Of a stretch of DNA of 64,000 nucleotides, positions 980 through 42,655 are shown piece by piece. Each line of letters begins with the position of its first letter. The first letter of the stretch is position 1. The stretch is from assembly GCF_032062105.1 (NCBI RefSeq), contig NW_026927339.1, forward strand, positions 186,001-250,000, given 5' to 3'. The position numbers and the translations under genes are program-made. This stretch comes from Saccostrea cucullata (taxonomy: Eukaryota). The notes under the pieces are model-generated. The model was not told the DNA's origin, ran no database searches, and saw only the letters and a list, made by a program, of their open reading frames with translations.

Positions 980-2706
980 AAATAGATGTTAGCCTGCTGC
1001 ATTGCCCAGTGACTTTATCACATGTAAGCTCGCAAGGTTTGTGGCATTTTGATATACACAGACGTCCAAAGTAACCTTCTGGACAGGATTCGCTGCAGTT
1101 AATTCCATATGTTCCAACTTTACAAACTTTGAATATGAATTATGGATTTATTCTATGAAATGTATGGAGATATTTAAGATCAAAATCATAAAACAATACA
1201 AAATAGGAGCAAAGCAGACAGGGGACCCCAAGACATCAGAGGAGGGATCAGGTGCCATGGAGGAGTGAGCATCCCTCTATGATACTTTCTTAGTGTACTA
1301 GTAAGGCGATGATATTAAATTGTAAAGAGAAATATCTTTTTTTAACTTCCAGACCATTCATACTGTACCTGTACATACGCCATTTTTAATATGGTAGCCT
1401 GAACAACAACTGGATCTAGAAAAAAAAAATAGAAAATATTTTCATTTTGCAAAATTAATTTATGGATTGAACTATAATGTTGTTTAATTTAATATAATTT
1501 AATTTTACTTGTATTCTAGCCTCTCATCGGTTGATTTCCAAAAAGAAACGAAAATTAATCTGACAATGTATGATCTGGTTTAGAATGGAGACACACTCCC
1601 TTGACAACCAGCTGAATCATCTGTATCCATGCAACCCTCTTATTTCTCGTCCTCGGAATTCATGGAAAATTCCAGATTTAATAAAATAATGTACCTTTAA
1701 CTTCAAACAGTAGCTCTCCTAACAAAAATATTCCATAGTAAAATATAGTTAACTATAGAACCAAAATTAAAACTTTTGAACTTTGATTAATTATGGTGAA
1801 ACTTTGGAACTCTGATTTACTTTGGTAAAAACTTTGGAACTTTGATTTACTATAGTGAAAACTTTGGAAGTTTGATTTACTATGGTGAAAACTTTGGAAC
1901 TTTGATTTACTAAAGTGAAAACTTTGGAACTTAAAAAAAACAGACAAAATACATAGGCTTATTTTTAACATTTTGCTATTCCCCATAAAGTTAACCTGAC
2001 TTAGAATATTTTTCTGAGTTATATATTACACTATAATTTAATTTGGTAGTAATGCATCATTTAATTGGATAAAAAATTAATCTAAATTGTAAAATCTGGT
2101 TTGCCTACGTCATAATTATGTACGTCGAAAACGTATCAATCCGCTTGGCGATACGTTTAAAATATGAAAAATTTGTAGGCGTTCTAAGGGAGAACTTCTC
2201 TTGTTTTATATACTCAATGATTGAAAATTAAATTGTAGGGAATGAATTAAATAGCAATCAAAATTATACTGCCATTACCTGGGTTGGAGCAGTATACTTT
2301 TTTTATAAACCACGAAGCGTAAGCGTATTTCATTTTCCTTGAATTTGGAGAAAACCTACTAAGAATTATCCTTTATCCAAACCAGTGACATAATATTAAG
2401 TCTCCTCCAAAGAAAAAAATTGTTGTATCGTCTGTCCTTTACTTATATACCTTTTATAAAGAGGAATTTGCAGTATTAATGTGTCAATATTTCTGTTAAT
2501 AGCATGTTTATAGAGAACCATTAGGCATAAAGCAATGCTATCATACCATGCATAGTTGAGAAATTTATGAATGCTAAATCATTATGATAACAAAGTGATA
2601 CTTACCCACACTGGTTACGATCATGTGTAATCTGACAAATAATTAAAGTAAAAATTTGAGCAAAACACACAAAAATTACAGTTTTTAGAAACTTCTTTGT
2701 ATTCAT
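980..2706 (-). CDS. R1: mini MEGF10/Draper/Nimrod-like receptor, partial. Exons 2706-2606, 1415-1369, 1126-980; downstream exons not identified in the window
   Basis: Spliced translation MNTKKFLKTVIFVCFAQIFTLIICQITHDRNQCG|SSCCSGYHIKNGVCT|VCKVGTYGINCSESCPEGYFGRLCISKCHKPCELTCDKVTGQCSRLTSI. GT-AG introns have the same phases (2,1,1) and cysteine spacing as the paralogues. The EGF exon is 15 nt longer because the usual donor position lacks GT. Confidence 0.85.
1497..1716 (+). repeat. Dispersed repeat of about 210 bp, second copy at about 23900-24105
   Basis: Shared GGTTGATTTCCAAAAAGAAACG, CCCTTGACAACCAGCTGAATCATCTGTATCCAT and TGTACCTTTAACTTCAAA. Confidence 0.85.
1770..1932. repeat. 30-bp minisatellite, about 5.5 copies
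   Basis: AAAACTTTGGAACTTTGATTTACTATGGTG units; these account for ORF 1753..1986. Confidence 0.9.
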
Positions 2707-3109
2707 TTCTGTTTTGTCCGTTTAGATTCTCCGTAACAAAGTTCATTCGAGGAAAATAAATTATTTGAATTTTTTTCCTTTATCACTTTATCAAAGGTTC
2801 AATAGAACATCGTACTTCCTGTTCAAAAATAAAAAAAAAAATTATAAATGGAATCAGCGATGGAAGTCATTTGTATGAACAACTAGTAATAGACTAAGCA
2901 TGGGAATGTGCAACAGACAACGGGTTATAAGGAAGCATAAAGAAAATTCTAACTTGACTAAATCAGGGATACATTTTGACGTCATGGTAGGCAAGACGTC
3001 AATTTTAGAACACGAGTTTTTCTAATACTGGTATTTAAAGATGTAATGTAACCCTAGAAAATGAATAGAAACGTGTGATCATTAACAAGAAAATGTTTAT
3101 ATTATGATA

Positions 3110-7514: not shown

Positions 7515-9624
7515 CTACCAAATATGTCCATAATTGGTGCTATTCCTTTTTCTGTTCTGTTTGCTGATACCTGATGATCGGAAAGTTTTGAAAGACTGAT
7601 TCATTGGGATTCCGGAAATTTCTACACCGCCACTAGTATCTGTAAAGTCATCAAACTCGTCACTATCAAAATCTCCTTCTTCCGGGCATGTCAATTCCTG
7701 CGATACCTTTAACTTCCGGACCAGGCTGTAGCGCTTTTTGGGTTTTGGTTTACTGTATACAACTTCCGGTTTATCTGTTTCAATATTATCTGTGGACGGT
7801 GTAGTTCCCCTACAATTCTGAGCTCTTGGGGGTAGAATGGGGCTGGTTGAGGTGTTATGCTCAAGGTCTTGATACCTTTCGCTATACGTAGAATGCTGGT
7901 TCTGGTTGGATGGCGTGACATAATCTTTAAAAAAATGAAATTTGTTTATAGAGAAAGTTTCCGTAATTGATTAATTTTCTGTAACTTTATTTTTATATTT
8001 TATTATATATAGATATCGCTTAGGTAATCATTTTCCATGTTTTAAATTCTAGTTGTGATTTACCCAATGCCTCGTTTTTCTTCTGTCTGCCTTTACTGAT
8101 AAAAATAAAAAGAAACAAATTAAATATTGATATGAAAACTGAAGTCTTAAATTTTCAACATTCAACCGCAGTATTTTAATGTAAATATCATACGATTTTG
8201 TTTGGCAAACATTGACGATGTTTTTCCTATAAATGTTTTTAAAGGATGCAATTAAAGACTTACCAAACCTTACACAGGAAAAAAAGTCCAACACAACTAC
8301 ATGAAAGGATAACAAGAAGAAAAGAGGCTCCAGCAATGATCCATAGCTTATCCTTCAGGAAGTCCTCTATCTTTTTGTCAATACTGATATTGGTAAAGTT
8401 TGTATTTGTATCAGTACTGCTATTCTTCAAACTTGGAGTTTCTTCAGGGTTACTCTCTGTATTTAATTGTATGTAAAAAAGAGATGATTAAAAAATGAAT
8501 ACAATGCTGGCATACAAATGTTGGCCTGTTTTGAAATTATGCGAATATTTCATATTTCAGATTATCACAACATTGTAAATTTTATATAATTTTCACATTT
8601 CTAACTTATAAAAATATTTTGTCCCCTTGTAGAACATTATAGTGAAACTTTACAATTATGACTACAGTTGTTATTTCTATTCTATTTTGTAAAAAAAAAG
8701 CTGGTTTAGAACATCTGTATATAACTTCAGTATAGTATATAACATTTTTATCTGTGTTTGAACACATGACAGGTCACAGCTATAGACTCTACAAATCAGT
8801 GAATAAAGATCTTTACTACATGTAGTGCCTGGTTCCAAATTACCTGAACATATCCCTGTTGATCTGTTACAACTTTTTAAACATTTTATTGGACATTCTT
8901 TCTTACAGCCTTTCCCATAATAGCCTTCAGAACATGTTCTACTACAGTTGATTCCTTGTGTTCCAGAAGGACATTCTATAAAAGACGGTATATACTTCTG
9001 CCAATACTTTTTAAATGTATTGTCCTAGGATATCATCTCACTATTACTCCTCATGAACTAGACATAAGATGCAGACAATTTTTGATATACTTCTTGCTTA
9101 TCGATTGATTTTTATTCAAGTAACAAAGGGCATAAAAATATAAAACGTAAAAGGATATGAAAAGGAAAAAAGATGTTTTTTTTTGCTTTCCTCTAAAACA
9201 GTTATGTATTTAAGTTAAACCGTGTGGTGGTTCATTAATTTTAGTTATTGTCCTTGATGTAGTTTATACAATGTATAGATAATTTTGCTTTATATATCTT
9301 AAATAAAAACAAAGAAGGAGACTGTGTTTTAGTTGATTTGATTCTTCATCACAGATTCATTTTCTATTCCATGAAAAATCTTTTTTTTTTCTTGTATTAT
9401 TTGATAATTGATGAATGTTACCTGTACATAAATCCTTGTAGAGGAAATAACCAGGGCAGCATTTGCCAGAACTGAAAAATAACAGTAAAAGATTTATTAA
9501 TACCTCCAGCTAAAAGCGTGAATTCCACCTACAAAAAAGGATTTCCTTACCCACACATGTTTGGATCGTTTGTGACAGCCAGATGGACGACACGTAGGAT
9601 CAAAACAAAAAACAGAACGTCCAT
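7515..9624 (-). CDS. R2: complete mini MEGF10/Draper/Nimrod-like type-I receptor, 296 aa. Exons 9624-9551, 9471-9422, 8975-8844, 8456-8264, 8095-8064, 7924-7515
   Basis: 891 nt in frame, all introns GT-AG. MDVLFFVLILRVVHLAVTNDPNMCG|SGKCCPGYFLYKDLCT|ECPSGTQGINCSRTCSEGYYGKGCKKECPIKCLKSCNRSTGICS, then a Ser/Thr/Asn stalk and TM LWIIAGASFLLVILSCSCVGLFFL, basic juxtamembrane KGRQKK, and tail DYVTP..YQDL..PILPPR..VVYSKP..KRYSLV..FDSDEFDD..SFKTF..TNYGHIW*. An in-frame upstream ATG is at 9630. Confidence 0.92.
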
Positions 9625-9660
9625 TTTCATCTTTTGTAATTAAAATTTATTTCAGTGACT

Positions 9661-9714
9661 GCTTCCTGGTTTATCCTAATTCACGACAGATTTATATTTT
9701 TAACAACCAGGAAA
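9661..9714 (-). promoter_or_regulatory. Paired opposite-orientation GGAA (ETS-like) motifs just upstream of the R2 start codon; equivalents upstream of other paralogues
   Basis: Plus-strand TTCCT/CAGGAA pairs: 9661/9707 (R2), 14646/14678 (R3), 21814/21864 (R4), 28105/28153 (R5), 42672/42735 (R7, second site CGGGAA). Single sites at 2814 (R1) and 35208 (R6). Confidence 0.5.
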
Positions 9715-10659
9715 AATGTCCTTCCCTCTTTAGTTGATGCAATTGAAGTATTTATTACTATAGAATATTTCAAAAGTATATATCCTGAAAACATTAAATT
9801 GAAACATATATAATGTTTAAAAAAGATTTTGCAGTACAAAAACTATACCATATTTCACATGTACACTTCCTTCAAAAACATGTTCCGTATGAAATGAGTT
9901 TATTAAGTATACTTTGTCTAGTAATTATACGTAATAGTCTTTATTTATCCAGGATCAGACATTAAGTATTAAGCTATCTATAATTGCTGTTCTGCATTGA
10001 ACCGTAATTTCAATCGAGTGTTGACATATGAAATTTAGCATTTTTAAATAAACACACAATATTAGAAATACAATCACATTTCATACAAAAAGACTACAAA
10101 ATGATCTTGAGAGAAAAAAATGTAATTTAAATGTTGACAAATGAAATATATAGAGATAACGAACAGCATTTAAGACCAAAAGTCCACAAAACAATACAAA
10201 ATAGGAGAGAGTAAACACAGACCTTTAAATCATCAGAGGTGGGGTGGAGGAGTGGGTATCCCTTTCCGACCGGTGTGCTCCTTGTCATGATCAGAAAAAA
10301 CGAAAATATCCGTCGTCAAATGGACTAACAATTAGTATGAAAAACATCATTCAGCATTTGACTCAATGATAAATTGTAATATCTTCGATGTCATTGTATA
10401 GACCAAAGAACTCAAGGAGTAAAACTTGATAAGATTCATAGATTGAAAAAATACTCAGAATTGACGGTTATATGGGCCAAAAGACGAAAGGATAGTCAAA
10501 ATTAAAATTTATGCTATAAAATAAATCGCTTTATATATTTCATCATTTGAATATGACAGTTCATGTGTTTCTTTTGTGTCATTACTGATTATTGATCATG
10601 TAGCACATTTAATTATTTCATGAATTGACTTAAGATTTTTATTATTATTATTTGTTTGT

Positions 10660-11495
10660 GTCCCTCGCAAAGTTGCTAAATCTCTGTGCGTTTCAAAGGG
10701 ACATTGATTTTGAATCAATGCTTTGATTTTGGCAATATCTTGAATTTGAAAAATGCTATAGTACGACCCTCGATTAAGCGACAGAGACTTGACACCATTT
10801 TCGAAGATGAATTCTTAAATTACAGACCTGTTTTAATTTGCCATTTCTATCTAAAGTATAAGAAAAAGCGGTGGCATCCAGACTTGAAAAAGACCTAATC
10901 TTCATGACCACGAGCAGTCGGCCAACCGAAATAGTCACTTTACAGAAACTGCCCTTCTCCTGGTGCACCATGATATTACATCTGCATTAGATAAGAATTC
11001 ATTGTTGATGTCGTAATGCTCCATCCCCTGGCTGTATTCGATTTAATTGTTCATAATATACTAATCAGTCGAATCGAATACGCGTTTGGTATCACAGAAT
11101 CGCTGCTTTTATGAATAGAGTCTTATGTATCTGGTCGACGACAGCAAATTGCGGTAGGGTCGAAATTCTCGAGAGAGTTCCTACTCCAGTTTGGTGTACC
11201 ACAGTGGTCTGTTCTAGAACGTCGTCTATATTGTATGTTTTAAAACCCATCGGAGACATTGCCGGAGACATAACATGTATTATCATTGTTATGCTGATGA
11301 CACACAGGTTTAACTGATTATCAAATCGAAGGACAGTTGGGACAACATTGCGAATAGACTTGAACGGTGTCTGTCTGATTTACAAGACTGGATGCAAAAC
11401 AACATCCTTAAGTTGAACCAGTATTAGACTGAACTCATCATCGTTACCCAAAAACGTATGGCAAATGAGTTTTCAGGACGTAAACTCACTCTTGG
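10660..11495 (+). mobile_element. Degenerate L2/CR1-group LINE reverse-transcriptase fragment
   Basis: Frameshifted RT motifs: NYRPV..FLSKV*EKAVA, TETALL, FGVPQWSVL, YHCYADDTQV, DWMQNNILKLNQY*TELII. Confidence 0.85.
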
Positions 11496-13874
11496 TTTGC
11501 TTTTCTTATTGTTTTTATTTCATATTTGCTCTTTATGGTTTCCATACTTATTATCCATTATCGATAGTGCAGTAGAAGTTCACCCAACCGAAAATGTCCA
11601 ACAGGGGCTAACAAATACGATATCTTTGAAAAATGGTTCGGGTAATTGGGCGGAACGTGTAGAAAAAGTCATGAAATACCGCAAGTCTTAGAATTCCAGA
11701 GAAAACGTAAGACTTGGTTGAAATGAATGTTGGGCAAGACATAGGTAATTCTTCATGTGTTTGCAATTATGATTACGAGTGCTTATTTTTTCAAAAAACA
11801 ATGCTAGTACATTCAAGTTTGTTTCGTCGATGCAATGGTGAAACTCACGTCAGACAGACGGTTGATAGGTAAATGTTAAGTTATATAAGATTTTTTATAG
11901 TTGATTTTATATAGAAATCCAATGAAAACTGTTACTTTCAGAAGCAAGGTTGGTTTTGTGACGTAAATGAGCAGTGCTGGTGGTGACAAGGCGATTATTA
12001 CTGAACCTCTGAAATGTATTGAATAATCATCCAAAACAAATGGATATTTCATGTTTACCTTACTTACTAGTAGAATGGTACTGTCATCAAATGTTAGATA
12101 CAGGAAGGAAAACGTCCAGTTTCCAAAATTTGTTCATTATTTTGTAATATATTTTGAACTCATTGGCAGTACTTACTAAAGACAATCATGAGGCGCAAAA
12201 TAAATTGTTTAGTATTGCATGAATAGTAAGATTTGCAATCCTGTCAAATCTCGGAACGGAGATTTCAGTAGTTACCTTTATATATTAATATACGGTGATA
12301 CGTCACTCTGTATCTGATGGTGCATCCATCTTAACAAACTAAATAGCAGAATTTCCTCCATTGTTCTGGTATTCTGGAAGCTTTTTATTATTTTTGTACA
12401 AACTCCAGCATATAATGACTATCGAGCAAATGTTGTGTTTACTTATATTCAAATTCCATTTAGAAATACCCTCCGTACAAAGTATTGTCTACAGTAGCTA
12501 TGGTGATATAAAGTTGGGGGTGAATTGTGCTTAGTTAGTTCTATGGCACATATTTTAATCTGTTGATGTGTATAAAGTTCTGTCGAAAATATTAGATTCT
12601 GATTGTTCAACTTTCTGCAATCTCAAGACAATTCCTTAGTTGCAGATTGCGGTATGAATTACTCCATGTCTGGAAGAAACATTTAGTTTTTATATATTTC
12701 TTTCTGGACATCTAGTTGGAAAAATATTCCAATATTTCCTATATCACTTTAATTCAGCTACGATGAATTTAAGGTTTTGATTTCGAATTAACGTAATTGC
12801 CAAAGATTTCATACGCATCAGTATCGTCAAACGAAAAGTAATATTATTTAATGACGAAAACATTTCATTGTGTATCAAACTATTAAATTATTTTGATTTG
12901 TTCAGTTTTGATTTTTTTTTTGGCACTGAAATTATAGTCCAACAAGGATATTGTACCAACTGCAGGATTTGCGAAATTTTAAGTATAACCGAGACAGGTG
13001 ATATCTTCAATCAACTGAGAGACATAAACTTCGTATGCAAGTGATAATTGTATAATGCAACATAAATATGATAATGACATGAGCAAACTTGACGTCATCA
13101 TGTTTATCAGAATGTATTGATGTAAGCTGACGATCAATATTTTTTTTCTAATTATAGAACAAATGTGTAAGTCTCTAAAGTGGTCTTTTTCTAGGTGTAT
13201 AAGAAATCAACGTGGAATTAAACGGAATATTTTGTATCACTAAAGCGTCATCGATATATTTAAAAATTACGTTGAATATTACACCAAAGGACTTCTTCTT
13301 TATATGTTTCTTTTATAAAATAGATTCTGCTAAATAGGAATACGAAAGGAAGTCTGCTACTATGACGGCACATTTCGAATACGTGGTTTTTCAACAGATA
13401 ACATCAACATTGGAAAACGTATGTGTGTGTCCAGAATGTATTTTAATGAATCAGTTTTGCAGAGGACCAAGGCCATGATTTTATAAATTTTGTAAATTCA
13501 TAAACTTAAAATGTTCTTTTCTATCGCGAAGAAGTTGTTTTTGATGTTTCGACTTTTAACAGGGAATGCCCATTCCTCTATGGTGTATGACCCCACTTCT
13601 GAATGTTTTGGAGGTCCGTCTTAGCTCTGCTCCTATTGAATTGTTTCATTGCTCTTCCTACATGTATTTCTTCTTTAATGTCCACATCCCATACCCCTAG
13701 GAAGACTGTTATGCTGCTGAAGATAAGCTTCAAATACTGACAGAAAAACCCTTTACACTTCCAGAAAAATGTAAAAGAAAGACTTATTTCGAAGACTGCT
13801 CATATACTAGTATAACAATCAAATTCTCATAATATATGATTTACTGCAAAACCATTCATATGATTTTATAATAC

Positions 13875-14614
13875 CTGGACAATACTCTGTTGCGCTGTTA
13901 CAATTGCGTACACATTCTAAAGGACACCTCTTCCTGCATTCTCTTCCATAATAGCCTTCATTACATTCCTCACCACAGTTGAATCCATATGTTCCAGGAG
14001 GACATTCTATAAATGATAATATAATGAAGTATATAGTTTTGCCACTTTCTTTCTACCATCTACTGAGTATTTGTAAGGTCCGTTTTACGGTTTAGATAGT
14101 AGAACTAAAGCGTATCGTGAGACAGAAACGCGCCTAAATATTAAAGTAAGATAACATAATTATTAAATGGACTTTAATTTTATGTGGCAAACAACTTAAC
14201 ACAAACTTACCTGTACATATATTGTCATTTAGAAAATAACCACTGCAGCAAGATCCAGAACTGAAAAAAAATTAGAATCTTTTATTGCTTTTTAACTAAG
14301 TGAAATATATGGCTATAACGAATAGTATTCAAGCTCAAACGTCCATGAAAAAACAAACGGACTTCCAAAACATAAGAAGTCGAATCAGGTGCCATGGAGG
14401 AGTGAGCATCTCCTGCCGACTGATCACATCCACCGTGTGCTACTTGTCATGATCAAGGAAAAACGGAAAAACCAGTCTACAATTCAGTGTGTTAAAATGC
14501 TAATTGCAGAAGTAAAACCTACAACGATTGTTTCTCTTACCCACACTTGTTTGGATCATTAGCTGTAGAGACATGGATGATATTTAGGAATGTAACAAAA
14601 GATAAAATATCCAT
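13875..14614 (-). CDS. R3: ectodomain-only paralogue (signal, CCxGY and EGF exons). Exons 14614-14541, 14260-14211, 14006-13875; no TM or tail exons found before R2
   Basis: MDILSFVTFLNIIHVSTANDPNKCG|SGSCCSGYFLNDNICT|ECPPGTYGFNCGEECNEGYYGRECRKRCPLECVRNCNSATEYCP. Exon sizes 74/50/132 are identical to R2 and R4. No stops, all 12 Cys present. Confidence 0.88.
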
Positions 14615-21781: not shown

Positions 21782-22002
21782 TTTCATTTACCTCAAATTA
21801 AATTTTAATGTATGTTTCCTTGTAAAGTCCTTTGAATGTATAACAATTATATATTGAAAATGACCAGGAAAAAAGGGCCCTTCCCTCATTAGTAAATATG
21901 TACCAGGTGTTTAATTTTTAGAAAGTTTTGATGTAAGGCATTACTCAATATATCAGAAACATATCAAATAATTAAATATTTTATACTAATAATGCAACAT
22001 GT

Positions 22003-25062: not shown

Positions 25063-28000
25063 CTACTCCCAAACATTTCCATATGCTGTGTTTGCTCCAT
25101 AATCTGCCTCTTCCTTCTCATCCAGGGACTGGAAGGTTTTGAAGGATTTTTCTTGGGGAAGTCCTGAAATTTTTACACTCCCCTTGGGAAGTCCTGAGAT
25201 TTGTACACCACTTGTTGTGTCTGCACCAACACCAAAATCGTCACATACCTCCTCATCCTCAGAAACATCTGGACACAACGTCACTTCCTGTGACACCGAT
25301 GACCTCCAGATAAAGCTGTAGCGCTTCTTTGTTGTAGGTTTACTGTATTCACAGGATTGATTGCTTTCCTTTGTATTTGATAATTGTTTGGTTAGTGTGC
25401 TTTTTACACTACAGTTGGTTCGAATGGATCCACTCGGGATGTTAGAGTAATCAGGTTCATGTCTCGAACTGTTTGATGACTGTGGTTTTTGATTTGTTGG
25501 ATGAGTACCATCTAAAAACAAGAAAAAATGAAATTGAAATTGAAAACGAAATCCGTGTTTTATATAATTGAATACTGTTCGTTCTCTCCATATGTTTCAT
25601 TGATAGTCAATTCCTATACAATTATCAAAAAACATTGTCGAAAGTCTATTTCTCTACAAATATAATTGTGTCAAACTAACGTGAACGTTAAAAAGCGCCT
25701 ACTGTTGACTTGTGTTTAATTCAAGCAATAAAATATATTTATCCTTTATCCATTTTTGTTCATCGTGACAAGGAGCTTACGGAAGGTGTGTCCACTCGGA
25801 AGTGTATGCTCACTCCTCAATGGCACATGATCTCACCTCTGATGTTTTTGAGTTCCGGATTTGCTCTTCTACTATTTTGGTTGATGGGCTTCTGAGTTTG
25901 AATACTGTTTGTTATATCCATATATTTCATTACTATTGATGAATGTAAGAGATTATGCTAATATTTACCATTTGTTCTATTCATCTTGAAACATTTTCTG
26001 CAAAATGAGAGAGAAAAATATAATATTAAAATGAATCTTGAAATATTTACAAATTGAATTATTGAGTTAAATTTAATATATTTATCTTCCAACTGTAATT
26101 AAAAAAAAATTATTTTTAATCGTTCAATTTTCATATTAAAACATTCATATTTCAATCATTCATGATGATAACAGGGATGATAAAATTTGGAAAAAAAACA
26201 TTAAAAGACGTTCTACAAAGTTTACACAACAAAAATGAATTTATACGTACAGGGCTTGAGAGAGGTGAATTAAGCCAATAGAACCACACAAAATGAGCAG
26301 TAAAAGAAAGGTCACCCCTCCTATAAGCCACGCGTTCTTCTTCAGAAAGTGCTCTATCTGCGTCTCAATGCTGTTGTTCTGGGTGTTGTTATCTACTACA
26401 AATAGATATCCTATTTTATCAGAAAAGTCACAAGGCCGTAACTGCTATTGAGGCAAGTGAGGCAAATGCCTCACTAATTTTGTAGAGGTTTCTGAAAAGT
26501 GAGTAAAGTTTTACATTTAACTTATGAATTATGTGCGTCTTCATGCCAAATTAATATTTTCAAATTTTGTTTCAATTTTGTAAATTGTTAATCTCATCAG
26601 GTGTCTCGTTTTCATTTAGAATGCATCATTGTGAAATGTGATTCAAAATGTTTGTTTTGTAAATTGTTTGATTGTTTTACATCCCTTCTAAGAATACTAG
26701 TATTCCATTCATATTGAGACACCACTACTTGCCGGTGGAGAGTTAAATCTGTACTGGGCTTTCAGGGTCACTGAAGATGATTGAACAGTGAGACATCTTT
26801 TTGTGCCATCACTTACTGTGATATAGGACCTCGGTTTCTACGGTCTCATCCAAAGGACCAGTTTCCACATCTTGCAGTGGAATTCGAATCCATAATGTAA
26901 GGATCAACTCCTTAGTCTGCGACTCTAGAGCATACCTCAACCACTGTGCCATGCGGGTGACAGTTTAAAACGTAAAAACCTTCTAAAATTTTTTATCTTT
27001 TATTTATATTCTAATACCAAGGTGTAAGGATCCCCTGTAACCCCCGTCACTACCCATCAGGTATAACCCTTGCCCCGTCTAGGACAAGGAGTGCCCAACA
27101 CCCTTGCCTCACTAAAAATTTGAGCCTAGTTACGGCCTTGAAAGATGGAGATAAAGAAAAGCATTCAAGATCAAACGTCCATATTTCTTTTTTTTTTTTT
27201 TTTTGACAAGAAAGATGTTTAATTCAGTGTGAAAGTAATGATCAAGCTTGCATTTTTAACATAATGAAATATTTTGCATTATCTTTATTAACGAGAAGAA
27301 CAACACAATTGCTTTATTAATTAAAGGCTTAAATATCTCCTAACTTCCATTGACTACAAAACATGCGAAGAAAGGTTTTTAAAATTCGAACTGATAATTG
27401 ATACACTTACGTGGACATCTTCCCGTGACCTCATTACAGTTGTTCTTACATTCAAATGGACAATCATTCCTGCAAAGCTCTCCATAAAACCCAGTAGGAC
27501 ACGCTTGACTGCAGTTTTCCCCAATTTGACCAGACCTGCACACTGAAAAAACACTGTCGTTTACTTTAGATTCCGTTAAATATAAGAGGGATTAATTACC
27601 GTGTAATGTCGCGAAAAGTACCGATCGTGAAATAGAATTACTAGTATGCTTTAATTTTAATGTTTCTGTCCATTTAAAATCTCTAAATCAATTGTTCACT
27701 CGCGAATTATTGTTCTCACAATTTCATGTTTAAGACCCGTTTGCAATATTAAGTACTTGCGTAAGAGAGGAAATCTAAATTATTGAAGATACAAACCCTT
27801 CAATATATAATGGATTAGAAAAAATATATACCTGTACATATCTCATTATGAAGAAAATAGCCCGCACAACACCGCATTCTGCAATTAAAGCAGATCTTAT
27901 TCATTTGTAAGATCCGTTTATCTTTTCTGAATATATAAAAGAGAGACAAAAAAGACAAACAAACTAGCAGTTTTGTCTTTCAGGTCTTACCCACACATGT

Positions 28001-28073
28001 TAGGATCCGGGGTGGCAGATGACACATAAATTTTAATGAAGCTTGGGAGAAGTATAAGAACAATTCCATCCAT
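25063..28073 (-). CDS. R5: complete paralogue, 294 aa. Exons 28073-27991, 27878-27832, 27542-27411, 26395-26251, 25997-25969, 25511-25063
   Basis: 885 nt in frame. MDGIVLILLPSFIKIYVSSATPDPNMCG|MRCCAGYFLHNEICT|VCRSGQIGENCSQACPTGFYGELCRNDCPFECKNNCNEVTGRCP|LDNNTQNNSIETQIEHFLKKNAWLIGGVTFLLLLILCGSIGLIHLSQA|LKCFKMNRTN|DGTHP..DYSNI..EYSKP..KRYSFI..SFKTF..DYGANTAYGNVWE*. The tail corresponds to ORF 25063..25521. Confidence 0.92.
26431..27140. mobile_element. hAT-like MITE (13-bp TIR CAAGGCCGTAACT) in intron 3 of R5, with a nested SINE at about 26665-26960
   Basis: CAAGGCCGTAACT...AGTTACGGCCTTG with subterminal GAGGCAA/TTGCCTC repeats. No clean 8-bp TSD. Confidence 0.7.
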
Positions 28074-30624: not shown

Positions 30625-33600
30625 TTATACAACGTCTAAATATTGCTCGCTTTGCTCATGGGCTTCTGGTAAGTAATTAAAATCGTTTCCTATCGTATGA
30701 CGTTTCTGTGCCGATTCCACACTCAATCTTGTATTCAAAGCTATTCTGCCCTGTCCTACTTTGTAGTCAGCAGATGTAAACGATGGTTTATTAGCGATCT
30801 TTTTATCTGTAAGAGTTCATACTTAGCTATTTACTGTTATCAAAGAGACTATTATATCGTGTCTTATATCACGAAATGAAATGTTAAAATTTCGGTCCAT
30901 ACCCTTCAAAATTCTTTTTCCAATCAATCTAACTTTATAAATGGTGTAGCTGAAAAAGAAAAAAAGAAACACACCATTGATTCATGAAGATAATCTTACA
31001 AACCACAAAGGAACTATATAGAGTTTAATGTATGATCATGAGGATATGAGAAGAAAAAAACAAAATCATAGAAAACAATGTAGGCTTTTTTTTACAGACA
31101 TTCTAAGTTTAAATGTATAGAAATAGAATTAGTTATTAGATCAACCTGGTCATTACAAAGATTCCAAATACTGAGATGGTAATGATGATCTGCAGGGCGA
31201 ACAGTCCAGACAAATAAGTCAAACTGTTGTTCCAATCCTCCACAGTTATAACTGCGTTAGGCCTTCAGAAAAAAAAACAAACTCAACAAAAACAAATTCC
31301 CTTTTAAAGCGGAGTAACAACAAGATTTCTTTTCCTAATCATTTGAGAGTTTACTTTTTAATACATTTATCCAATACATACCTTGTTTTTATAACTTCAA
31401 TTGATTCAGTTTTCATTTTCTGTTTAATATCTGGACAAAGATCATGAAAGAAAATAATATATAAAAATATGATTTTATTTTCTATATTTTATTTCTTTAA
31501 TTTATTCTAATTATTGTAAAATAAAAACAATGCGGTTAGGATAAGTGTATCTCAGAGAAGTGTGAGGAATTATTTATTTATTTCATTTCATGGATGCTTT
31601 TATATTTGTATTATTTATTACACAAAAGATTGTATTCGTATGGATTTGTGATAACAATTCCAGTAAAGCTAATTAACATGTATTTTCATACCTAGACATG
31701 TTCCGTTAACTTTGTTACATTTCCCCATACACTCCTGTGGACACTCCTGCCTGCACTGTCTTCCATAAAATCCCTCAGGACAAATTTCAGTACAGTTTAT
31801 ACCAACTGTTCCTTCATAACATTCTGAAAAGAAGCATTATTTCCTTATTCCTGTTTTTTTTTCATGCAATTATGGTAAAAGGAAGAGATTTTTTTTTTCA
31901 TTTTAATTCCTTCAAAAAATGATTTGTCCCAATTTTAAAAGAAAGGTTTTATTTTATCATGACCTTATAAAAAATGATATAAAAAATTAAATGTCCATGA
32001 AATTAAAAAAAAACTCACCTACAGAATCAAAATTTCACTAATCTATTGGTAAAATTTCATGAACCGCTCACGTGCAAAGAAAACAATCAATCAAAATATT
32101 AGGACATCAATTTCATCTAATCAGTTTATTGTCTGTTGTCTATTTTATTTTATTTTATTTATACATTATTTATTTCTTTGATAGATATCTTGATAGGATT
32201 TGCATGCTCATGCAGTTGATATTTACACTAGTACCTGTACATCTGTCTCTATAGAGAAAAAATCCAGCACAACAATTGTTTCTAAAAGTAAATCAAAATT
32301 TTCATTTTGTTTTTCTCAAAAAATTTTAAGCTAATTCTTATACATGTAATAACATTCATAGACATCCTTATGGAGTTCTGATCAAGCCACTTTTAGAAAT
32401 TAAAAATATTCATTTCTAAAAAGAAACTGAAGAGTTTTCTCAATTTGTACCCTTGTTATAATTTTGATAAAATTCTTCATTAATTAGATCTAGTATATGA
32501 AAGATTCCTATCAAATTTGAGAAATATATTCCTTTAATGATATGAAAAGAATTCAAAAAATCTACTAGATCTTGACCTTATGTGTCAGATTTATAACTTA
32601 TAACAATAGAACATTGAAGAATATAGATAGATTAATTGTACACCACAAAAATATAGTTATTTCCACGATTTGATTATTATTTTCATATAAAAATACCATC
32701 CACCTGCTCTTTAAAAGCCATATTTGAATCAAGTATACTTTCAAAAATAATTTTTATTTCCGTATGTACAAAAAATAGAATTGAAAAAGAACTTGAACGC
32801 AGAGGAATGAAATTTATTGATTTCATTAAAAAAAATTCTATAGTAAATCACTTTAATATATAATACTTTGTCTCAATATGATTCATTATAACTCTATCAA
32901 TTTTTAAAAATTCTTTTATACAAGAACTTATTCATTTTTTTTTTCAAAATAAAAACACTTGGTGTTCCATTTAACTCGATATTTCAATATATTTCAGAAG
33001 TAGCTTTCAATGTCGACATGTTTTGTCCTGGTAAACTAGAAATTTGACATTAACATAGTAAGCCATGTTAGAATAAGATTTTTTTTTTACTGTAAAACGA
33101 AAATGGCTAGCTTGTCAACTTCTTCAAATCATAAAAAATTATTTATATTTATATCAATACTGTAAATCACTTTTTATTCCCGAGAACGTTATTTTCGCGT
33201 ATTTTAGTCTTTCTTATGATTATACAGAGCAATAACCACAAAATGTTCAAAATTTTGTCTCGCTTATTAAGAATCAATGCTTGTATTGGGAGAATAAGGT
33301 GTTTTGAAAAGTGATCTACTGTGTAAGGTAGAATTTAACATTTTGAGCAATAATTCTTGACTTGAACTTGTCAAAACTCTTTGGTTTGAAAACGTCAAAA
33401 CTCTTATTTTACACCATGAAGAAGATTTATCGTGGCAATGACATTTGGAGATAACGCCAAGCTCAAAAGACCATCCAAAAAATACAAATTGGGATCAGAG
33501 TAAAACAAACCTCCTCAACATGCCATGAAAATGTATGTATTCCCTGATTTACAAATCCCTTCTTAGCAAAGCAGCAATGAATAAATATTACATGTATTAG

Positions 33601-35158
33601 TATGATAGATTGAGTAGAATTACTATTTTCGGAAAAAATTATGTTTCTCTTTAAAATAATTACACACTGTAGCAATAAACCCTATATACTAAAGGATTAT
33701 TGTTACCTGCTTTGTTAAAATGGATAATTTTATTGACTAGGTATAGTCAATTAACAATGAAAACTTCCATTCATATCTTGCCTGGATATATCCTAATGAG
33801 CTTTAAACAAAAGATACAACAGATTTCGACAGATTAGTTTCGTATTATGATGTTTCATTAGCAAAAGACGTTTTAAATTTAAATTCTAAGTTGACAACTT
33901 CCTTTACTTCTGTTGTATATAACCTTATCAGATGCAAACTGCTTTATATATTCTATTACAAAAGATCATGCTCTATGTTTTAACTATTTAAAAGAAAGCA
34001 ATCTATTGAATGTGTAAATTCTAAATTTCTACGTATGGTGATTTTGTCAGCAAATACAATCTTTCATTAAGTAAAATGCTGATTGACATTTTTTCAACTA
34101 ACAACTGTTAGGCTGTCATTTTCACTCTGAAGTGTCAACGAATTTTCTTGGTTTTTTGTTGTTTTTTTTTTTTACACGACAGGTGTGACCGTCTGCAGGG
34201 GATGCTCACTTATCCATAGCGCTAAACGCCCCTTCGAGTTTTTTAGAAGTCAGTGTTTGCTCTGCCCCAGGCTTGTAGTGTTCAAATGGATTTCTGATAT
34301 TGAATATTAGATTGATTGATTAATTGTATATTGTTTAACGTCCCTCTTGAGATTTTTTCACTCACATGGAGACGTCACCGTATGCCGTTGAAGGGCTTCA
34401 AATTTTGACCTTTTCTCGGCACTCAGGGCCATTGAGAAGTGAGGGATCTTTTTCTTGCCAACACCTGCTGCTTTCACGGGGTCTCGGTTTTATGGTCTCA
34501 TCCGAAGGACCCGCAACTTTCACTTCAAAGTGCCGAGCGCATGGCCAAGGAACAGTTGCTACCCATTTTTTATAGACTTAGGTCAGTCGCGGCCGAGATA
34601 CGAACTCACGACCTCCTGTTCACGAAGCGAGTATTGAATATTAGGCGTTATCTCTTTTTCCCTTTTTATTTTAGCTTAAAATTTGATTATGTAGTACAGT
34701 AAATGAAATGAATTTGCAGTAAATTTATTTCTTTGAGAAAACTTTCAACCTTGAGATAAATCTTCAAAATAGTACTTTCAATGTTTATTTTATTATATTA
34801 ACATTCCTTTGCTTAGCATTTTTTGTGTTTTCAGTTGTTCGATAAGTTTATCAAAATTCACAAACTAAGAAATCAAATTATGTTTGAATAAGTTATTTTA
34901 TTATATTAACATTCCTTTGCTTAGCATTTTTTGTGTTTTCAGTTGTTCGATAAGTTTATCAAAATTCACAAACTAAGAAATCAAATTATGTTTGAATAAG
35001 TATATCTTCATTGAAATACGTATTAAAAGAGACTTTCTATTCCAGAGAAGTATTTTAAATGTTCTGCAGAATATAACCTACCCGCAGTGATTAGGATCCA
35101 GAGTAATCGATGTCAGATTGTTGTTGTTAAGAATTGCAGTAGTAAAAACAAATTCCAT
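30625..35158 (-). CDS. R6: complete 7-exon paralogue, 216 aa, short tail. Exons 35158-35082, 32281-32235, 31823-31692, 31430-31382, 31262-31146, 30949-30903, 30806-30625
   Basis: 651 nt in frame. MEFVFTTAILNNNNLTSITLDPNHCG|NNCCAGFFLYRDRCT|ECYEGTVGINCTEICPEGFYGRQCRQECPQECMGKCNKVNGTCL|DIKQKMKTESIEVIKT|RPNAVITVEDWNNSLTYLSGLFALQIIITISVFGIFVMT|SYTIYKVRLIGKRILK|DKKIANKPSFTSADYKV..NYLPEAHEQSEQYLDVV*. The signal peptide is weak. Exon phases mirror R7. Confidence 0.82.
34311..34631 (-). mobile_element. tRNA-derived SINE (5'-clipped) with a 13-bp TSD, inserted in a Penelope-like tail
   Basis: TSD TATTGAATATTAG at 34298-34310 and 34632-34644. B-box-like GAGTTCGTATCTC on the minus strand and an (ATCA)n tail. 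Confidence 0.88.
34785..35001. repeat. Apparently exact 108-bp tandem duplication in R6 intron 1
   Basis: TTATTTTATTATATTAACATTCC...GTTTGAATAAG twice. Confidence 0.92.
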
Positions 35159-36786: not shown

Positions 36787-39700
36787 TTACAAGACTTCTG
36801 TATACTGTCCACTGCGTTCTGTGGCCATAGGAGTCAGGTACTGCCCAGTAGAGGAAGTCAAATGCTGGCCAGTAGAAGGGGTCAAATACTCTGACTGGTT
36901 CTGTAATGTAAGGCCTGTATATGTTGATGATTTCTCTTTCTTAGAAACGCCAGCATGGTCTGACTGGTAAACAGCCTGATAATCTGCAGATAATAACATA
37001 CTTAAAAATATACTGTATAAGAGTTATATTTACAACAACAACATGAATGGTAAACTTAAAGAAATAACGAAAGGATGCTCCAATATGTACCTCTCTGGGA
37101 AGTTTTCCTGTTGTATTTCGTTGAGAGGAAAGTTGTATAGCTACATTAATAATATAAAAATCTTCTTATTGACAATTCAATTCATTATTTGTATTTATTA
37201 CATACATAGTTATAAATACAGAATTTTTGCATATGTGATATGCCTAACATCATAATAGTCGTATCGACTGATATGGATCTGCGTGGCTGATACGGATCAA
37301 TATTATATAAGAGGATTATTTTCGTAGTTTTCATTGGCTGAAAGGACGTCACATGACATTCCTCCTTTCGCGATAGCGACGCGAAAGCGCGTCCGCAGAA
37401 AATGATATCGCACGACACGCCGTTCGGTTGCACTGAAGTTACGTAGAACGTGACGTCATAATAAAAAAAACGTGAATCTAACCATTGTGACGTAATTACA
37501 GCCAAGTCCGTTGTGTTAGGACTGTGTCGGTGCATTCAATTTGAGTGATTATATAATATAAATATTATGGACTTCAGTGAACGGTCAATATGTGGTTATA
37601 AGGACTCATGGCAATTGATATTGACCTCAGACACAGAAAATGATAGCGACCTCGCAGGCTCGGTCGCTATCACTTTCTGTGTCTTCGGTCAATATCAATT
37701 GCCATGAGTCCTTATAACCACATATCGACCTACACTGAAGTCCATAATTGTATAATATTACACCCCTAGTAAGTGAAACCTTTACAAAACAGTATCTTGT
37801 GATAATACACACATAATTTTGTGTTCACATTCTCATAATTTTTAAATTATTGGTCTTTGAAACAATAAGCTACATATTGTCAGTAGGTAGTGCTTGATTA
37901 TATATTTGTATTTTTGTCAAGTTAAAGTGTGCTGTACATTATTACTAAGTATGTTATAAACATTATAAAACATCTCGTACCTTTTCTACATCATATCCTG
38001 TAAGCACTCGACCAATATCAGCCCTCGGGCCTTCGACCCCCTGACTGATATTGTTGTCTCGGGCTGATATAGGACGTGGCATGGAAAAGGGGTATGTATT
38101 ATTCTCTATGTATTCCTTCTTTTGTGAATCTATGTCAACATTTCTTGATATAAAATTAAAAAAGAAAGTTTGATTTGTACATACGCTTTTATTGAGCTCA
38201 AAAGTCTGTTTGAACTGTACAAAAGAGAGAGAATATACGCACCTGGTAACAACAAGTAACAGAAGAACCGCTATTACAACCACTATATGTGATGCCAGAA
38301 GTCCCAGAATAAAACTTGTAATGTTGCTTAACTTCTTATCTACGTCACTGCTGTAAAAAAGAAAGACGGATATAGCTGTTTAAGGTCAAGATCTAGTAAA
38401 TGAAAGATGCCTACAGATTTATCAAATTTGAGAAACAAATTCCTTTAATGATGCTTTATAAATAAAGATTGGCTAAATAAGGTGTTTCGGGTCATAATTT
38501 GTAGGTAAACAAGGTGAAGAACCATATTTTAAACAGTCATTTTCAATATAAAATTAAGAAAACCGATCATGAATATGGTTTTTTTTTTCATATTCGACAA
38601 AGGAAATTTATCCAGATTGCCTACAGTGTCTCAGAAAACGGTAATTTGTATGTTCACGGTCTCTTCTTTAAAATAATGTCAAATTTAATATGGGTATCCA
38701 GATTACTTTTCATATAATTTCAAATTGAATGCCATGAAAATACTCTTTTTTCTACATAATTCTGCTACAGCCGTAAAGTACGGAAAGAAAGTTGAAATTG
38801 ATTATGACGTCATCATGGATCTAGCACCACAAAATCAGTCTAAAGTCATTTACTAGATCTTGACCTTAATTACGTCTCTACTTCAAAATTTAAGTCTTAG
38901 AAACTAGATTCTTTAAGTTGTACTAATTTAACATATGTTTTTCCTATCTTTAATGTATTTGCAATGTTATGGATTCTAAAAATAAACTTTTATAAAACTA
39001 TTACATAACATTTTTCTTATTGCTAACCTTCTCTTTCACACATTTGCAATGAGGGCTAGAGAGGGATAAAATATTATTTGATTACATTTAAAATAACTTT
39101 ATCTGGTCACAAAAGCTTACATATTATACTTCTGAATCCGTTGACCTGTTGGAAACGTCGATGTATTTTCCTCGTACGCCTCTTCTGATTAAGAAAGCAT
39201 GTAGTTAATTCGAATATGTAAAAATAAAAATGGTATGAGGCAAATTACGTATGAAAGGAATTAAAGTTTTACGCATTAATAATGCAAAAAAAAAAAACAA
39301 TTACGCTATTAGCAGCTTTAAAATTCTACTTAAATTTACATGTACATGTACATCATGTAATACTATGGTAAACCTTTCTTAGTTATCAAACAGAAAAACT
39401 TTCCCTACCGAATCATTATTTTTTATGCGCCCGTATCGACAAATCAGAGGCGTATATTGTTTTTGTCCTGTCTGTTTGTTTGTTTGTCTGCAAACTTTAA
39501 CCTTCGTCATAACTTTTGAACCATGAAAGATAGAGACTTAACATTTGGTATCCTTACTACACTAGTTAAATTCTTACAATGATACCAAGGTCATTGACTT
39601 TGTGACCTTGACTGTGACCTATATGCTAAAAATAACGTCTTTGTCTGCAAAATTTAACCCTCGTCATAACTTTTACGCCTTGAAAGATGGAGACTTTATA

Positions 39701-42655
39701 TTTGGTATGCATACTGCACTTATTAAGCTCTTACAAATGACAGACAGGTCATTGACCTTGTGACCTTGACTGTGGCCTATGCTCGCTGTCATAAACTTTT
39801 GAGAATTCTCAAAAAAAAATTCTAAACTCAACTTTTGAGAATTACTCATCTGAGAATTTGAGAATAAAAGAGTTTAAGGAGTTTTATTTTGCTCAACTTT
39901 TTTATGACGGTCACTGAGTCTGAGATTTTGGATTTGAGAAAATTCTCAGACTTGCGTATGTTTTATAACGGCGGACTCTATATGCTAAAATTGCTTTTTA
40001 GAACCTTCACCATAACTTCTGAATCATAAGAGATAGATACTTCATGTGCTGGTATGCATACTCCACTAATTTAGTTCTTTAAAATCACATCAAGGACAAT
40101 GACCTTGTGTCCTTGACTGTGACCTATTTGCTAAAAATAGCTTTTCCGTACCTTCGCCATAACTTTTGAATCATAAGAGATAGAGACTTTATATTTGGTA
40201 TGCATACTCCACTAATTAAGTTCTTTAAGATAATTTAAAGTTCAATAACCATGTGACCTTGACTGTGATTTATATGCTAAAATAACTTTTCAGTACCTTC
40301 GCCATAACTCTTGAATCATAAGAGATAGAGACTTTATATTTGGTTGCATACTCCACTAATTAAGTTATTTCAGATAACACCAAGTTCGTTAACTTAATGA
40401 CCTTGACTGTGACCTATATGCTTAAATAGCTTTTTTAAAACTTTGTTGCCGCCGGGCGCATAGTGTTTCAAAATATCATCTTCTTACATTTAATATCATC
40501 GTGAAATCTACGAGGGGTTATCAAAAAGTTCGTGGAATAGCGTCATAAAATTAAAACCGCTTTAGGTACTCGGATGAATTTTAAAATATATAGTTATCAA
40601 CATCTTTTCTATCTAAAGAATAAACCATGAATCATAAATTTTATTTTTTAATAAGTTAGTAATGTTTTTGTAAGCAATTGTATGTCCAGGCGGCGCAACC
40701 TCGAACACGATGTTTTTGCGACCTATGTGTAACTGAGAAAAACTCTTTTGATATGATCATTTGACATCCTAAATTCCCGTTATTCTATGTATGTGTCGGG
40801 ACACAATTGTTCCATAAAATATGATATTTTCACTTCATTTTGGGAGTTCTATGAAATTTTATTGTAAAGTTTACACGGAATGTCCAAACAAATGAGGCCT
40901 CGAAAATTACGTCAAAAGGGGGGAGGGGTTTCCCTTTCCAACATTCTATAAAGGTTTGCCTCTGAAAAAACTGATATAGACCTAAAATATGTTGAAACTG
41001 GTTACAGAGAAATAATATGCATCCAGATTACTTGTCTTTTAATGTGAAAATAGATTCAGAGAGAAAAGGGATACACGGTAAATGTCGATTTGCAGACAAG
41101 GTGTTAAAAATCAATCACGTCAAAAAATGACGTTGATCATATGTTGTAGATATCGAACTTCCAAAAGCAAAATATGCCGGCACAATCAAGTGCGGATCTC
41201 TCCCAATGTATTAATCCATTTAGAATATTATATTTATTGAAGACCACTGTTCATGACATTGTAAAGTCATATAAACAAGGCGGGTTTAAGTCCTTATTCA
41301 GATCCAAGGAATCTCATCAAAACAGTGTATGAGATAGAAGAAGCGAACATTGAAAAAACAATGACGTTATCGGACGTCAAGAAAACAAACGACGACAGCC
41401 CCGGATGATCACATAATGTCGTTTTAATGTTATAATAATTTGCCAAATAATGAACGTATCAGGCTAAAATTTTCAACATTTCTTTATTCTTTCAAGCAGA
41501 ACATGGCAGTCAGTATATAGTTAACGGCTACCTTGAAATGGCAGTCAGTATATAGATAACAGCTACCTTGACATGCCAGTCAGTATATAAGTATATAGAT
41601 AACAGCTACCTTGACACTTCCCTGTATCCTTATGACAGCTCAGCTGACATTCTGTCGGGCACCGACCCAAACAAAATTTACCATGGAAACCATCAGGACA
41701 AACCTGACTACAGTTCTCGCCAAAAGTTCCTACATCACACGCTGTAAAATTACCAGTTTGTTATTAGGAATTAGAGTTGTATGCTGTCTTGACAGAAAAA
41801 AAGGGTTAAATTGCAAGAAATTACCGATGCACTGGCCACCTCGTAAAAAGTAATTGACACAGCAAACGCCAGGCCTGAAAACAGAATGATACCGAATCAC
41901 AGAGTAAATGTAATAAGCTTTTCATCTCATAAATGTAAGAATTTAATGGTTACATAAGTTATACCTAATAATCATCTTTAGGAAGTTTAAACAAATGCAA
42001 GCCGATAAGCACTTTTCAAACAGTGTAAGCGATTTCAGACAAGGTGTTTTAAGCTATAGTAACTAGTACTTAGGAGGATTGAAAATATTAATGATGTTTT
42101 ATTTTTCAATATCATTAAGGGAAACGATTTTCTTTCAAAATGGCTTTAAGTTGTACAGGTTTAGAATTTCCCATGATCTTTAGTTAGATTTGTATTTAGA
42201 TATGATTTTTACTCAACGAGTTGTGTGTTTTTTAAAAAACACAATCAGTTGGATAAAAATCATATCCAACTACAAATCATAGGTGATATTATTAAACCCA
42301 TATTTAATATTTCACAATCAATGTTTTACACATTTTTTTGGTATATAGTACTCCACTTTATATTACTTCATTACACTAACGAAAAACCCATTGTGAAGTC
42401 ACTTCTGTGGGATACGAAAACGATATTGCATGAGCTATACCCATGGGATAAATGAAACGCTCTTTCGTTCTCAGTCAAATCCCACGTATAATTAAACATA
42501 ATATTATAATATAATATTAAATATAATTAAATATTAAATATAATTAAATTCTGAAAATTATTTGCTCACCTGCAAAGATTTGGATCCGTGGTTGTAGAAG
42601 ATTGAATAACATTTACGTTTAAGAAAGCAAATATTACCGAAACCAGCATTCTCAT
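36787..42655 (-). CDS. R7: complete 7-exon paralogue, 228 aa, Tyr-rich short tail. Exons 42655-42570, 41874-41825, 41741-41610, 39184-39121, 38350-38243, 37140-37091, 36983-36787
   Basis: 687 nt in frame. MRMLVSVIFAFLNVNVIQSSTTTDPNLCR|PGVCCVNYFLRGGQCI|ACDVGTFGENCSQVCPDGFHGKFCLGRCPTECQLSCHKDTGKCQ|EEAYEENTSTFPTGQRIQKYN|ISDVDKKLSNITSFILGLLASHIVVVIAVLLLLVVT|SYTTFLSTKYNRKTSQR|DYQAVYQS..STYTGL..EYLTPSTGQHLTSSTGQYLTP..SGQYTEVL*. Confidence 0.88.
37564..37748. repeat. Long near-perfect palindrome (arms of about 88 bp), probably the terminus of a non-autonomous Crypton-like or foldback element
   Basis: ATTATGGACTTCAGTG..GGCAATTGATATTGACC..GATAGCGACC[loop]GGTCGCTATC..GGTCAATATCAATTGCC..CACTGAAGTCCATAAT. 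Confidence 0.85.
39419..40486. mobile_element. Helitron/HINE-type non-autonomous element with about 5 internal 125-160-bp tandem units; a small inverted-repeat insertion lies at about 39781-39978
   Basis: Starts TTTTATGCGCCCG..(TGTT/GTCT)n, units begin CCTTCG(T/C)CATAACT at about 39500, 39659, 40003, 40150 and 40276, and it ends GCCGCCGGGCGCATAGTGTTTCA..TCTT. Similar elements at about 35769-36170, 56262-56796, 59861-60360 and 60821-61445. Confidence 0.75.
40511..40720 (+). mobile_element. Left end of a related mariner-like element; right TIR not found
   Basis: TA|CGAGGGGTTATCAAAAAGTTCGTGGA resembles the TIR at 15436. Extent is uncertain. Confidence 0.55.
41503..41615. repeat. 35-43-bp tandem repeat, 3 copies, overlapping the R7 EGF-exon splice donor
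   Basis: ATGGCAGTCAGTATATAGATAACAGCTACCTTGA units. Confidence 0.85.

Follow-up and report, generated by a model that had tools for sequence, protein, structure and literature searches.

A tandem array of compact cysteine-rich receptor genes in the oyster Saccostrea cucullata as a candidate recognition-receptor cluster

Several described systems offer points of comparison for clusters of small single-pass receptors. In the Nimrod superfamily, CCxG(Y/F) serves as the membership criterion, the NIM repeat follows the consensus CxPxCxxxCxNGxCxxPxxCxCxxGY, and membrane and secreted members occur together (compare NimB with NimC/Eater; PMC4073527); NimA itself combines EMI, NIM and two EGF units (PMC13076899). 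Draper-/MEGF-like genes are, as a class, enriched in oyster agranulocytes (PMC13070813). Parasite resistance in snails is under the control of polymorphic clusters of single-pass proteins (PMC7494358, PMC12297450), and the pearl oyster has divergent immune haplotypes (PMC9646362). Here, a 64,000-nucleotide stretch of the Saccostrea cucullata genome (contig NW_026927339.1, hereafter C9476, positions 186001-250000; "the window") is described that contains a tandem array of receptor genes, R1 to R7. The genes are numbered, and their positions given, within the window; coordinates cited for C9476 refer to the whole contig. Taken together, the evidence somewhat favors a diversifying recognition-receptor cluster, formed by birth-and-death of small type-I receptors, for which ligand, cell type and signaling are put forward as proposals.

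The gene anatomy can be read directly from the window, which contains no N stretches. Six-frame scans pick out three exon types, each present seven times and always on the minus strand: one with CCx(G/N)(Y/F), one rich in Cys, and one that encodes a signal peptide and ends in D(P/R)NxC. The exon plan is common to all genes: first the signal-peptide exon with its D(P/R)NxC end (phase 2); a CC exon of 47 or 50 nucleotides (phase 1); and a third exon (phase 1) of 132 nucleotides in six copies and 147 in R1. GT-AG sites fit all seven models, all copies start with an ATG and signal peptide of their own, and each mature ectodomain contains 12 invariant Cys in a single domain of ~65 amino acids. This 12-Cys pattern occurs seven times in the window and not once in any of 20 shuffles. 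The CCxG(Y/F) form of the motif is found in six of the seven copies, with CCxNY in R7. The usual order after the Cys domain is a short stalk, one transmembrane helix and a tail of 75-160 amino acids. Pairwise ectodomain identity among paralogues is 42-58%, with 15 of 59 columns invariant.

The models thus bear out the core of a preliminary description of this DNA, which proposed seven co-oriented minus-strand paralogues with phases 2,1,1, a 132/147-nucleotide exon and 12 Cys. Its count of seven holds for the window but not for the array, which comprises nine copies, the other two lying past the window start at ~164.4k (R0) and ~157.9k of C9476. Nor is the cluster, which had been called hidden, wholly so, since partial or fused RefSeq models exist at the locus. 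The uniqueness claimed for the minimal architecture was overstated: at least 150 related third exons are spread over many arrays genome-wide, although the R2-type tail is confined to the present locus within the genome. The literature searched contains no description of the architecture, the tail motifs or the locus, and five orthologue LOC identifiers have no papers; the cluster is undescribed there, yet it is one of many such arrays in the genome.

Splicing is observed directly in RNA from four runs aligned to window 8265-14264, the region of R2 and R3. R2 (7515..9630, minus) encodes a complete receptor of 298 amino acids in six exons, and its joints 9551/9471, 9422/8975 and 8844/8456 are supported by raw oligo-dT reads from one run as well as by contigs from two more. 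For R3 (13424..14614, minus; exons 14614-14541, 14260-14211, 14006-13875 and a terminal exon from 13713), the joint 14211/14006 occurs in two contig sets, and a single 557-nucleotide contig links 14006-13875 to 13713-13424. The latter exon reads Ala-stop, making R3 a secreted, ectodomain-only precursor of 86 amino acids. All five junctions fall at the predicted bases. The possibility that R3 is an alternative cassette for the transmembrane region of R2 was rejected: R3 has its own stop exon, and no R3-to-R2 joint is among those listed for this region in the four runs, although rare read-through may still occur, as 20 weaker joints fall outside that list. A short interspersed repeat, highly abundant at window 10140-10412, 13560-13650 and numerous other sites, is prominent in the RNA reads and contributes a fragment to the R3 terminal exon.

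These junctions also bear on whether the copies are fragments of one long MEGF/Draper gene or, relatedly, whether the second haplotype described below is a paralogous duplicate. Annotation provides some grounds for such a reading, in that RefSeq fuses neighbors. The isoform XP_062612381.1 joins the R2 first exon (window 9630-9551) to the R0 body ~31 kb away, through either a cross-mapping artefact or long-range splicing, and a 355-amino-acid "draper-like" protein of Magallana angulata joins an upstream ectodomain-only cassette to the next gene. Against this, each copy begins with its own ATG and signal peptide, and RNA joins the EGF exon directly to the transmembrane exon in R2 and to the stop exon in R3. 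These data largely refute a one-gene reading, which was set aside in favor of separate small receptors, as first described. The second-copy contigs, for their part, tile the locus once, are collinear and grade into 92-97% identity. Either form of this alternative is therefore scarcely credible.

The domain itself was examined by homology searches that took single exons or database proteins as queries. The AlphaFold model of the ectodomain (predicted local distance difference test, 87) is a small beta/disulfide module. Its best fold match, first in both searches but weak, is an N-terminal fragment of SCARF1 (Foldseek E 0.018, prob 0.99; VIA Z 3.5-3.7). SCARF1 is also the best vertebrate sequence match (8HN0; E 3e-4 with a single sequence, 3e-5 with a profile), aligning at chain positions 18-36, which include the CCxG motif, and 56-100; the EGF units of NAGPA and Tie2 match as well or better by sequence. 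The likeness to SCARF1/SREC-I (PDB 8HN0, 8HNA) comprises a SCARF-type N-terminal Cys/EGF module in a type-I protein with a long tail. In contrast to SCARF1, the oyster receptors lack the ~20 residues between the matched stretches, corresponding to the first EGF core, as well as every subsequent EGF repeat. The SCARF1 site for modified low-density lipoprotein (R160/161, R188/189; PMC11563577) lies outside the part matched by the ~65-residue ectodomain. By sequence, the domain thus resembles the SCARF1 N-terminus without the first EGF core, supporting a kinship with the SCARF/MEGF10 EGF module, of which the preliminary description had named MEGF10.

Membership in the Draper/Nimrod group, also proposed earlier, is not supported. 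The receptors share with Draper, CED-1, MEGF10, PEAR1 and Nimrod proteins a CCxG(Y/F) motif ahead of an EGF-like unit, and with Nimrods the coexistence of membrane and secreted members. However, no Pfam EMI match is found in 16 ectodomains, where just 3-4 residues separate the first Cys from CC; the NIM repeat is absent from the 12-Cys spacing of all copies and orthologues; and neither NPxY nor an immunoreceptor tyrosine-based activation motif (ITAM) is present in any window model. Pfam EGF matches are sub-threshold only, including a weak PEAR1-like EGF, and multiple EGF-like repeats are not present: RNA from R2 and R3 has the one 132-nucleotide unit spliced straight to a transmembrane or stop exon. 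Without EMI, NIM repeat, NPxY or ITAM, and with one unit instead of many, the receptors are not Draper or Nimrod by definition. The DPNxC...CCxGY start presumably resembles a MEGF10 EMI domain that has lost its middle part. Prokineticin matches in Pfam were rejected as below cut-off and limited to Cys spacing. A word search with the ectodomain, of limited sensitivity, retrieved only itself.

A second set of contigs provides a comparison across the locus. The overlapping contigs C11087 and C14731 are collinear with R4 and below at ~70-90% identity, and C201 spans R5-R7 at 92-97%. Together with their flanks, these probably constitute the second haplotype of one animal, an allelism deduced from unphased sequence. 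In the second haplotype, one or more additional full receptors are present, an additional EGF exon is broken, and so is the R1 ectodomain. A further third exon beside its downstream flank (C10746:32618-32746) is probably an extra copy without counterpart in the window haplotype. The terminal Tyr motif is cut off in R4 and mutated in R0 of the window haplotype, but kept in the other haplotype. Between-haplotype synonymous divergence (dS) is 0.1-0.5 in ectodomain, transmembrane and tail exons, close to the 0.4-0.8 separating these genes from S. echinata. Deep differences therefore separate the haplotypes in sequence, copy number and terminal-Tyr status, in line with the high polymorphism that had been predicted.

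Selection was assessed by pairwise ratios of nonsynonymous to synonymous divergence (dN/dS) between haplotypes and by M1a/M2a and M7/M8 codon site models in the author's own code, with branch proportions fixed. A contrast between ectodomain and tail is directly observed in R2, where the ectodomains of the haplotype pair are 55% identical with dN/dS 1.09 and the tails 92% identical with dN/dS 0.09, at similar dS (Fisher p 1e-6). Pooled over five pairs, dN/dS is 0.56 in the ectodomain (0.91 without Cys) and 0.31 in the tail. The R4 pair is reversed (ectodomain 0.28, tail 0.70), which fits a relaxed tail. In seven R2-clade ectodomains, M2a is preferred to M1a (likelihood ratio 14.1, p 0.0009), with ~17% of sites at dN/dS 3.5; the same models give no signal of positive selection in R2-clade tails (dN/dS 0.23). 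Thus, within this clade, turnover is fast at the non-Cys residues of the ectodomain, against a conserved tail. The most distant pairs of Magallana paralogues likewise have 58% identity in the ectodomain and 78-85% in the tail. The proposal of a diversifying domain on signaling tails is accordingly upheld for the R2 clade and Magallana, in the sense of variable ectodomain and conserved tail, but not as array-wide positive selection.

Several observations weigh against a diversifying recognition cluster. Positive selection over all 17 copies is non-significant (M1a/M2a p 0.09, M7/M8 p 0.49); purifying selection acts on the ectodomains of R4 and R5 (dN/dS 0.23-0.49); and the R2-clade subset was picked after the pairwise data had been seen, with gene conversion between copies a further potential source of inflated signal. 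The flanking contigs are also just 86-90% identical between haplotypes, and the deep divergence therefore extends beyond the receptors. Expression depth in the four RNA runs is low, and the small Nimrod relative NimA acts in adhesion, not scavenging (PMC13076899).

Several of these points fit a mostly neutral birth-and-death of a redundant receptor with a non-immune role in adhesion, development, shell or gill, the haplotype split reflecting hybrid or structured ancestry and not balancing selection. About half of the sites in the ectodomain look neutral, neither haplotype has an intact R1, and stray broken exons occur. This explanation is nevertheless unlikely, as it does not readily accommodate the tenfold ectodomain/tail contrast in dN at similar dS in R2, the significant R2-clade site test, the recurrence of the contrast in Magallana, or the 92-97% identity of R5-R7 immediately beside the 70-90% block. 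Two very old, copy-number-variable haplotypes in one tight cluster, together with R2-clade positive selection, could instead indicate an allorecognition or gamete-recognition locus whose ectodomains bind self-allele products on other cells. Here, the many similar arrays genome-wide argue against a single self locus, and R5-R7 are barely polymorphic, making this quite improbable.

The tails inform a different alternative, namely organization as paired receptors. In the KIR, LILR and Siglec families, this entails near-identical ectodomains on opposite tails; a member with an immunoreceptor tyrosine-based inhibitory or switch motif (ITIM or ITSM); and a short-tailed member with a charged transmembrane residue, or an ITAM member. 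The array has two unrelated tail classes. R2-type tails carry PxxPxR and juxtamembrane Cys, and R6/R7 tails carry a non-canonical YxxP/E-x7-8-YxxV pair, whose YxxP-x8-YxxV spacing in R7 is presumably similar to that of the MEGF10 tail; the R6 and R7 tail exons gave no BLASTP alignment. R2 and R5 end in the ITSM consensus, but its Thr at -2 is not conserved in Crassostrea/Magallana, and the conserved terminal element is therefore YGx(I/V/L)W, not an ITSM. A charged residue (Lys, Arg or Asp) with a short tail is found in no intact transmembrane segment, polar residues being limited to Gln in R6 and His in R7, both long-tailed. Finally, the R6/R7 ectodomains are 42-53% identical to those of the other tail class, and the closest ectodomains share a tail class. 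The paired-receptor organization suggested in the preliminary description is, in the strict sense, not sustained by this combination. A true paired-receptor complex would have shared ligands and opposing outputs, with R2/R5 inhibitory or switch receptors, R6/R7 activating and R4 and R3 decoys; the two tail classes, the ITSM consensus at the R2/R5 ends, one ITIM consensus in R7, the polar transmembrane residues and the presence/absence variation of the terminal Tyr between copies and haplotypes speak for it. With identity across tail classes this low, no ITAM or charged short-tailed member and no conserved Thr at -2, it is improbable.

Another parallel for the R2-type tail may be SCIMP (PF15050), in which a membrane-proximal Cys, a Pro-rich stretch and spaced tyrosines are similarly arranged; SCIMP-type palmitoylated adaptors scaffold Src-family and SH2 proteins (PMC9052152). 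The transmembrane segment plus tail of two Magallana orthologues score above the Pfam SCIMP cut-off (E 3e-7, 1e-6), with five more weak. SCIMP differs in having no folded ectodomain, and the Saccostrea proteins give no match. As the score comes mostly from the transmembrane segment (tails alone, E 1.4-2.5), homology was rejected in favor of an analogy to palmitoylated adaptors.

The same architecture and tail motifs are found in Ostrea, Magallana, Crassostrea and S. echinata. A tail profile search retrieved ten proteins among 1.84 billion representatives, the named ones being from Saccostrea, Ostrea, Magallana and Crassostrea. Full-length orthologues share EYSK, an acidic DSDEF patch, QISxLP and terminal YGx(I/V/L)W, with KKRYS(L/F) in most; in RefSeq, they bear automatic names such as "MEGF10-like", "draper-like" or "SCARF2-like". 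Within the oyster MEGF10-like swarm, the nearest Atlas cluster is a 161-amino-acid mollusc "MEGF10" cluster (score 0.88), which is no more than a lead. Synteny is observed directly: a lipocalin/FABP-like gene flanks the array on one side and a further small EGF receptor on the other, likewise in C. virginica and M. angulata. The C. virginica locus has two ectodomain cassettes and one transmembrane/tail region, and in M. angulata a separate expansion covers ~100 kb, the gene nearest the FABP-like gene having ectodomain exons and no transmembrane exon. With R3, these arrangements bring to three the number of genera in which a full receptor is accompanied by an ectodomain-only or extra cassette. 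At its furthest, such evidence might suggest an oyster-wide, anciently balanced locus, where selection diversifies a minimal domain derived from SCARF and opposing outputs are set by secreted copies and terminal-Tyr gain/loss alleles, amounting to a paired-receptor/allorecognition system on an EGF, not an Ig or lectin, scaffold. This extension is rather unlikely.

Complete, tail-reduced and secreted members, as anticipated, are all present: R2, R5, R6 and R7; R4; and R3. By the models, R7, R6, R5, R4 and R2 are complete type-I proteins, with R3 and R1 lacking a transmembrane exon. The R2 tail contains a Cys-rich juxtamembrane region, PxxPxR, VYSK, KKRYSLV, an acidic patch and terminal YGHIW. 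R7 (36787..42667, minus) is predicted as a complete receptor of 232 amino acids in seven exons (42667-42570, 41874-41825, 41741-41610, 39184-39121, 38350-38243, 37140-37091 and 36983-36787). Its start is possible at 42667, 12 nucleotides above the boundary first assigned. It has a Tyr-rich tail ending in the YxxP-x8-YxxV pair, 92% identical to its second-haplotype counterpart. R6 (30625..35158, minus), a predicted complete receptor of 216 amino acids, also has seven exons (35158-35082, 32281-32235, 31823-31692, 31430-31382, 31262-31146, 30949-30903 and 30806-30625), with a weak signal peptide and the C-terminal QYxxVV seen in R7. A tail-degenerate R6 is ruled out by a frame open to 30625.

R5 (25063..28073, minus) encodes a complete receptor of 293 amino acids in six exons, according to the gene model and the second-haplotype RefSeq protein, to which it is 99% identical over the first 87 residues. 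Its identity to a 281-amino-acid S. echinata orthologue is 67% over the whole length, and its tail carries EYSK, KKRYSF, an acidic patch and terminal YGxVW. The window-haplotype RefSeq model of R5, LOC134274136, has intron sequence from ~26.9 kb in place of the ectodomain; the second-haplotype model is correct. R4 (19210..21787, minus) is predicted as a receptor of 267 amino acids with a reduced tail: the RYSL motif is lost, and an AGA>TGA stop specific to the window haplotype removes the terminal Tyr motif. R1 (980..2706, minus) retains intact signal-peptide and ectodomain exons in its model (2706-2606, 1415-1369 and 1126-980). Sequence comparison places a frameshifted remnant of its cytoplasmic tail at 1..255 (minus), running past the window start; with the transmembrane exon deleted as well, R1 is ectodomain-only in the window haplotype. 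A 52-nucleotide tandem repeat (3.5 copies, window 305-484) occupies the site of the absent exon. In the second haplotype, the transmembrane exon is present and a stop lies in the EGF exon. Since the breakage differs between haplotypes, decay is more likely than a designed secreted form. At ~176.4-177.2k of C9476, a relic partial duplication resembles exon 1 of R3 and the sequence upstream of it, but exons 2-3 are missing.

Among neighboring features, the lipocalin/FABP-like gene (48512..50243, plus, four exons) is head-to-head with the array and serves as a synteny marker, not a member; in M. angulata, a MazG-like domain gene on the minus strand adjoins it. Further small EGF-type receptor genes, of another subtype, follow immediately downstream of the array at ~145.2-150k and ~139.4k of C9476; the first is also the downstream neighbor in C. 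virginica and M. angulata. Window 46156-47865 (minus) holds a 569-amino-acid open reading frame from a remnant of a non-LTR (long terminal repeat) retrotransposon (zf-RVT, E 1e-9). A ~2-kb direct duplication of 93% identity is found at window 55413-57454 and from 63456 onward, with shorter related copies near 51819-52704.

The snail clusters offer a close analogy for a diversifying recognition cluster. Like Biomphalaria PTC2/GRC, the oyster array combines tandem single-pass transmembrane genes, TM-less (transmembrane-less) paralogues and deeply divergent haplotypes with gene presence/absence (PMC7494358), observed here as two copy-number-variable haplotypes of one animal, their allelism deduced. 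PTC2 genes lack known domains, and no homology between them and the oyster receptors has been shown. SudRes1 is likewise a MEGF-rich resistance region (PMC12297450), although its receptors carry galactose-binding and phosphatase domains. PTC2/GRC and SudRes1 are tied to infection phenotypes, whereas the oyster cluster is known here from sequence and RNA alone. Variable outer tips on stable signaling tails are typical of immune-recognition loci. On such a reading, the disulfide scaffold may present a variable binding face for non-self or damaged-self ligands on haemocytes or mucosa. Clustering could then allow Src-family kinases to phosphorylate the conserved tyrosines (YSK, YSL/F and terminal YGx(I/V/L)W), and the phosphotyrosines might recruit SH2/SH3 adaptors, promoting uptake. 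The juxtamembrane Cys are likely palmitoylated. Secreted copies could act as decoys or opsonins, tail-reduced alleles may dampen signaling, and the cluster would turn over by tandem duplication.

Oyster transcriptome papers list dozens of "draper-like" or "MEGF10-like" genes without known nature, and current RefSeq models at this locus are shown to be fused or truncated. The locus supplies a defined family whose exon structure and conserved tail motifs are described, together with candidate selected residues and a secreted member confirmed by RNA, and the orthologous position is available in farmed Crassostrea and Magallana species. As the 65-residue domain is easy to express, ligand and signaling tests are now direct. 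If the cluster behaves like snail PTC2/GRC, it would be a candidate marker for disease-resistance breeding.

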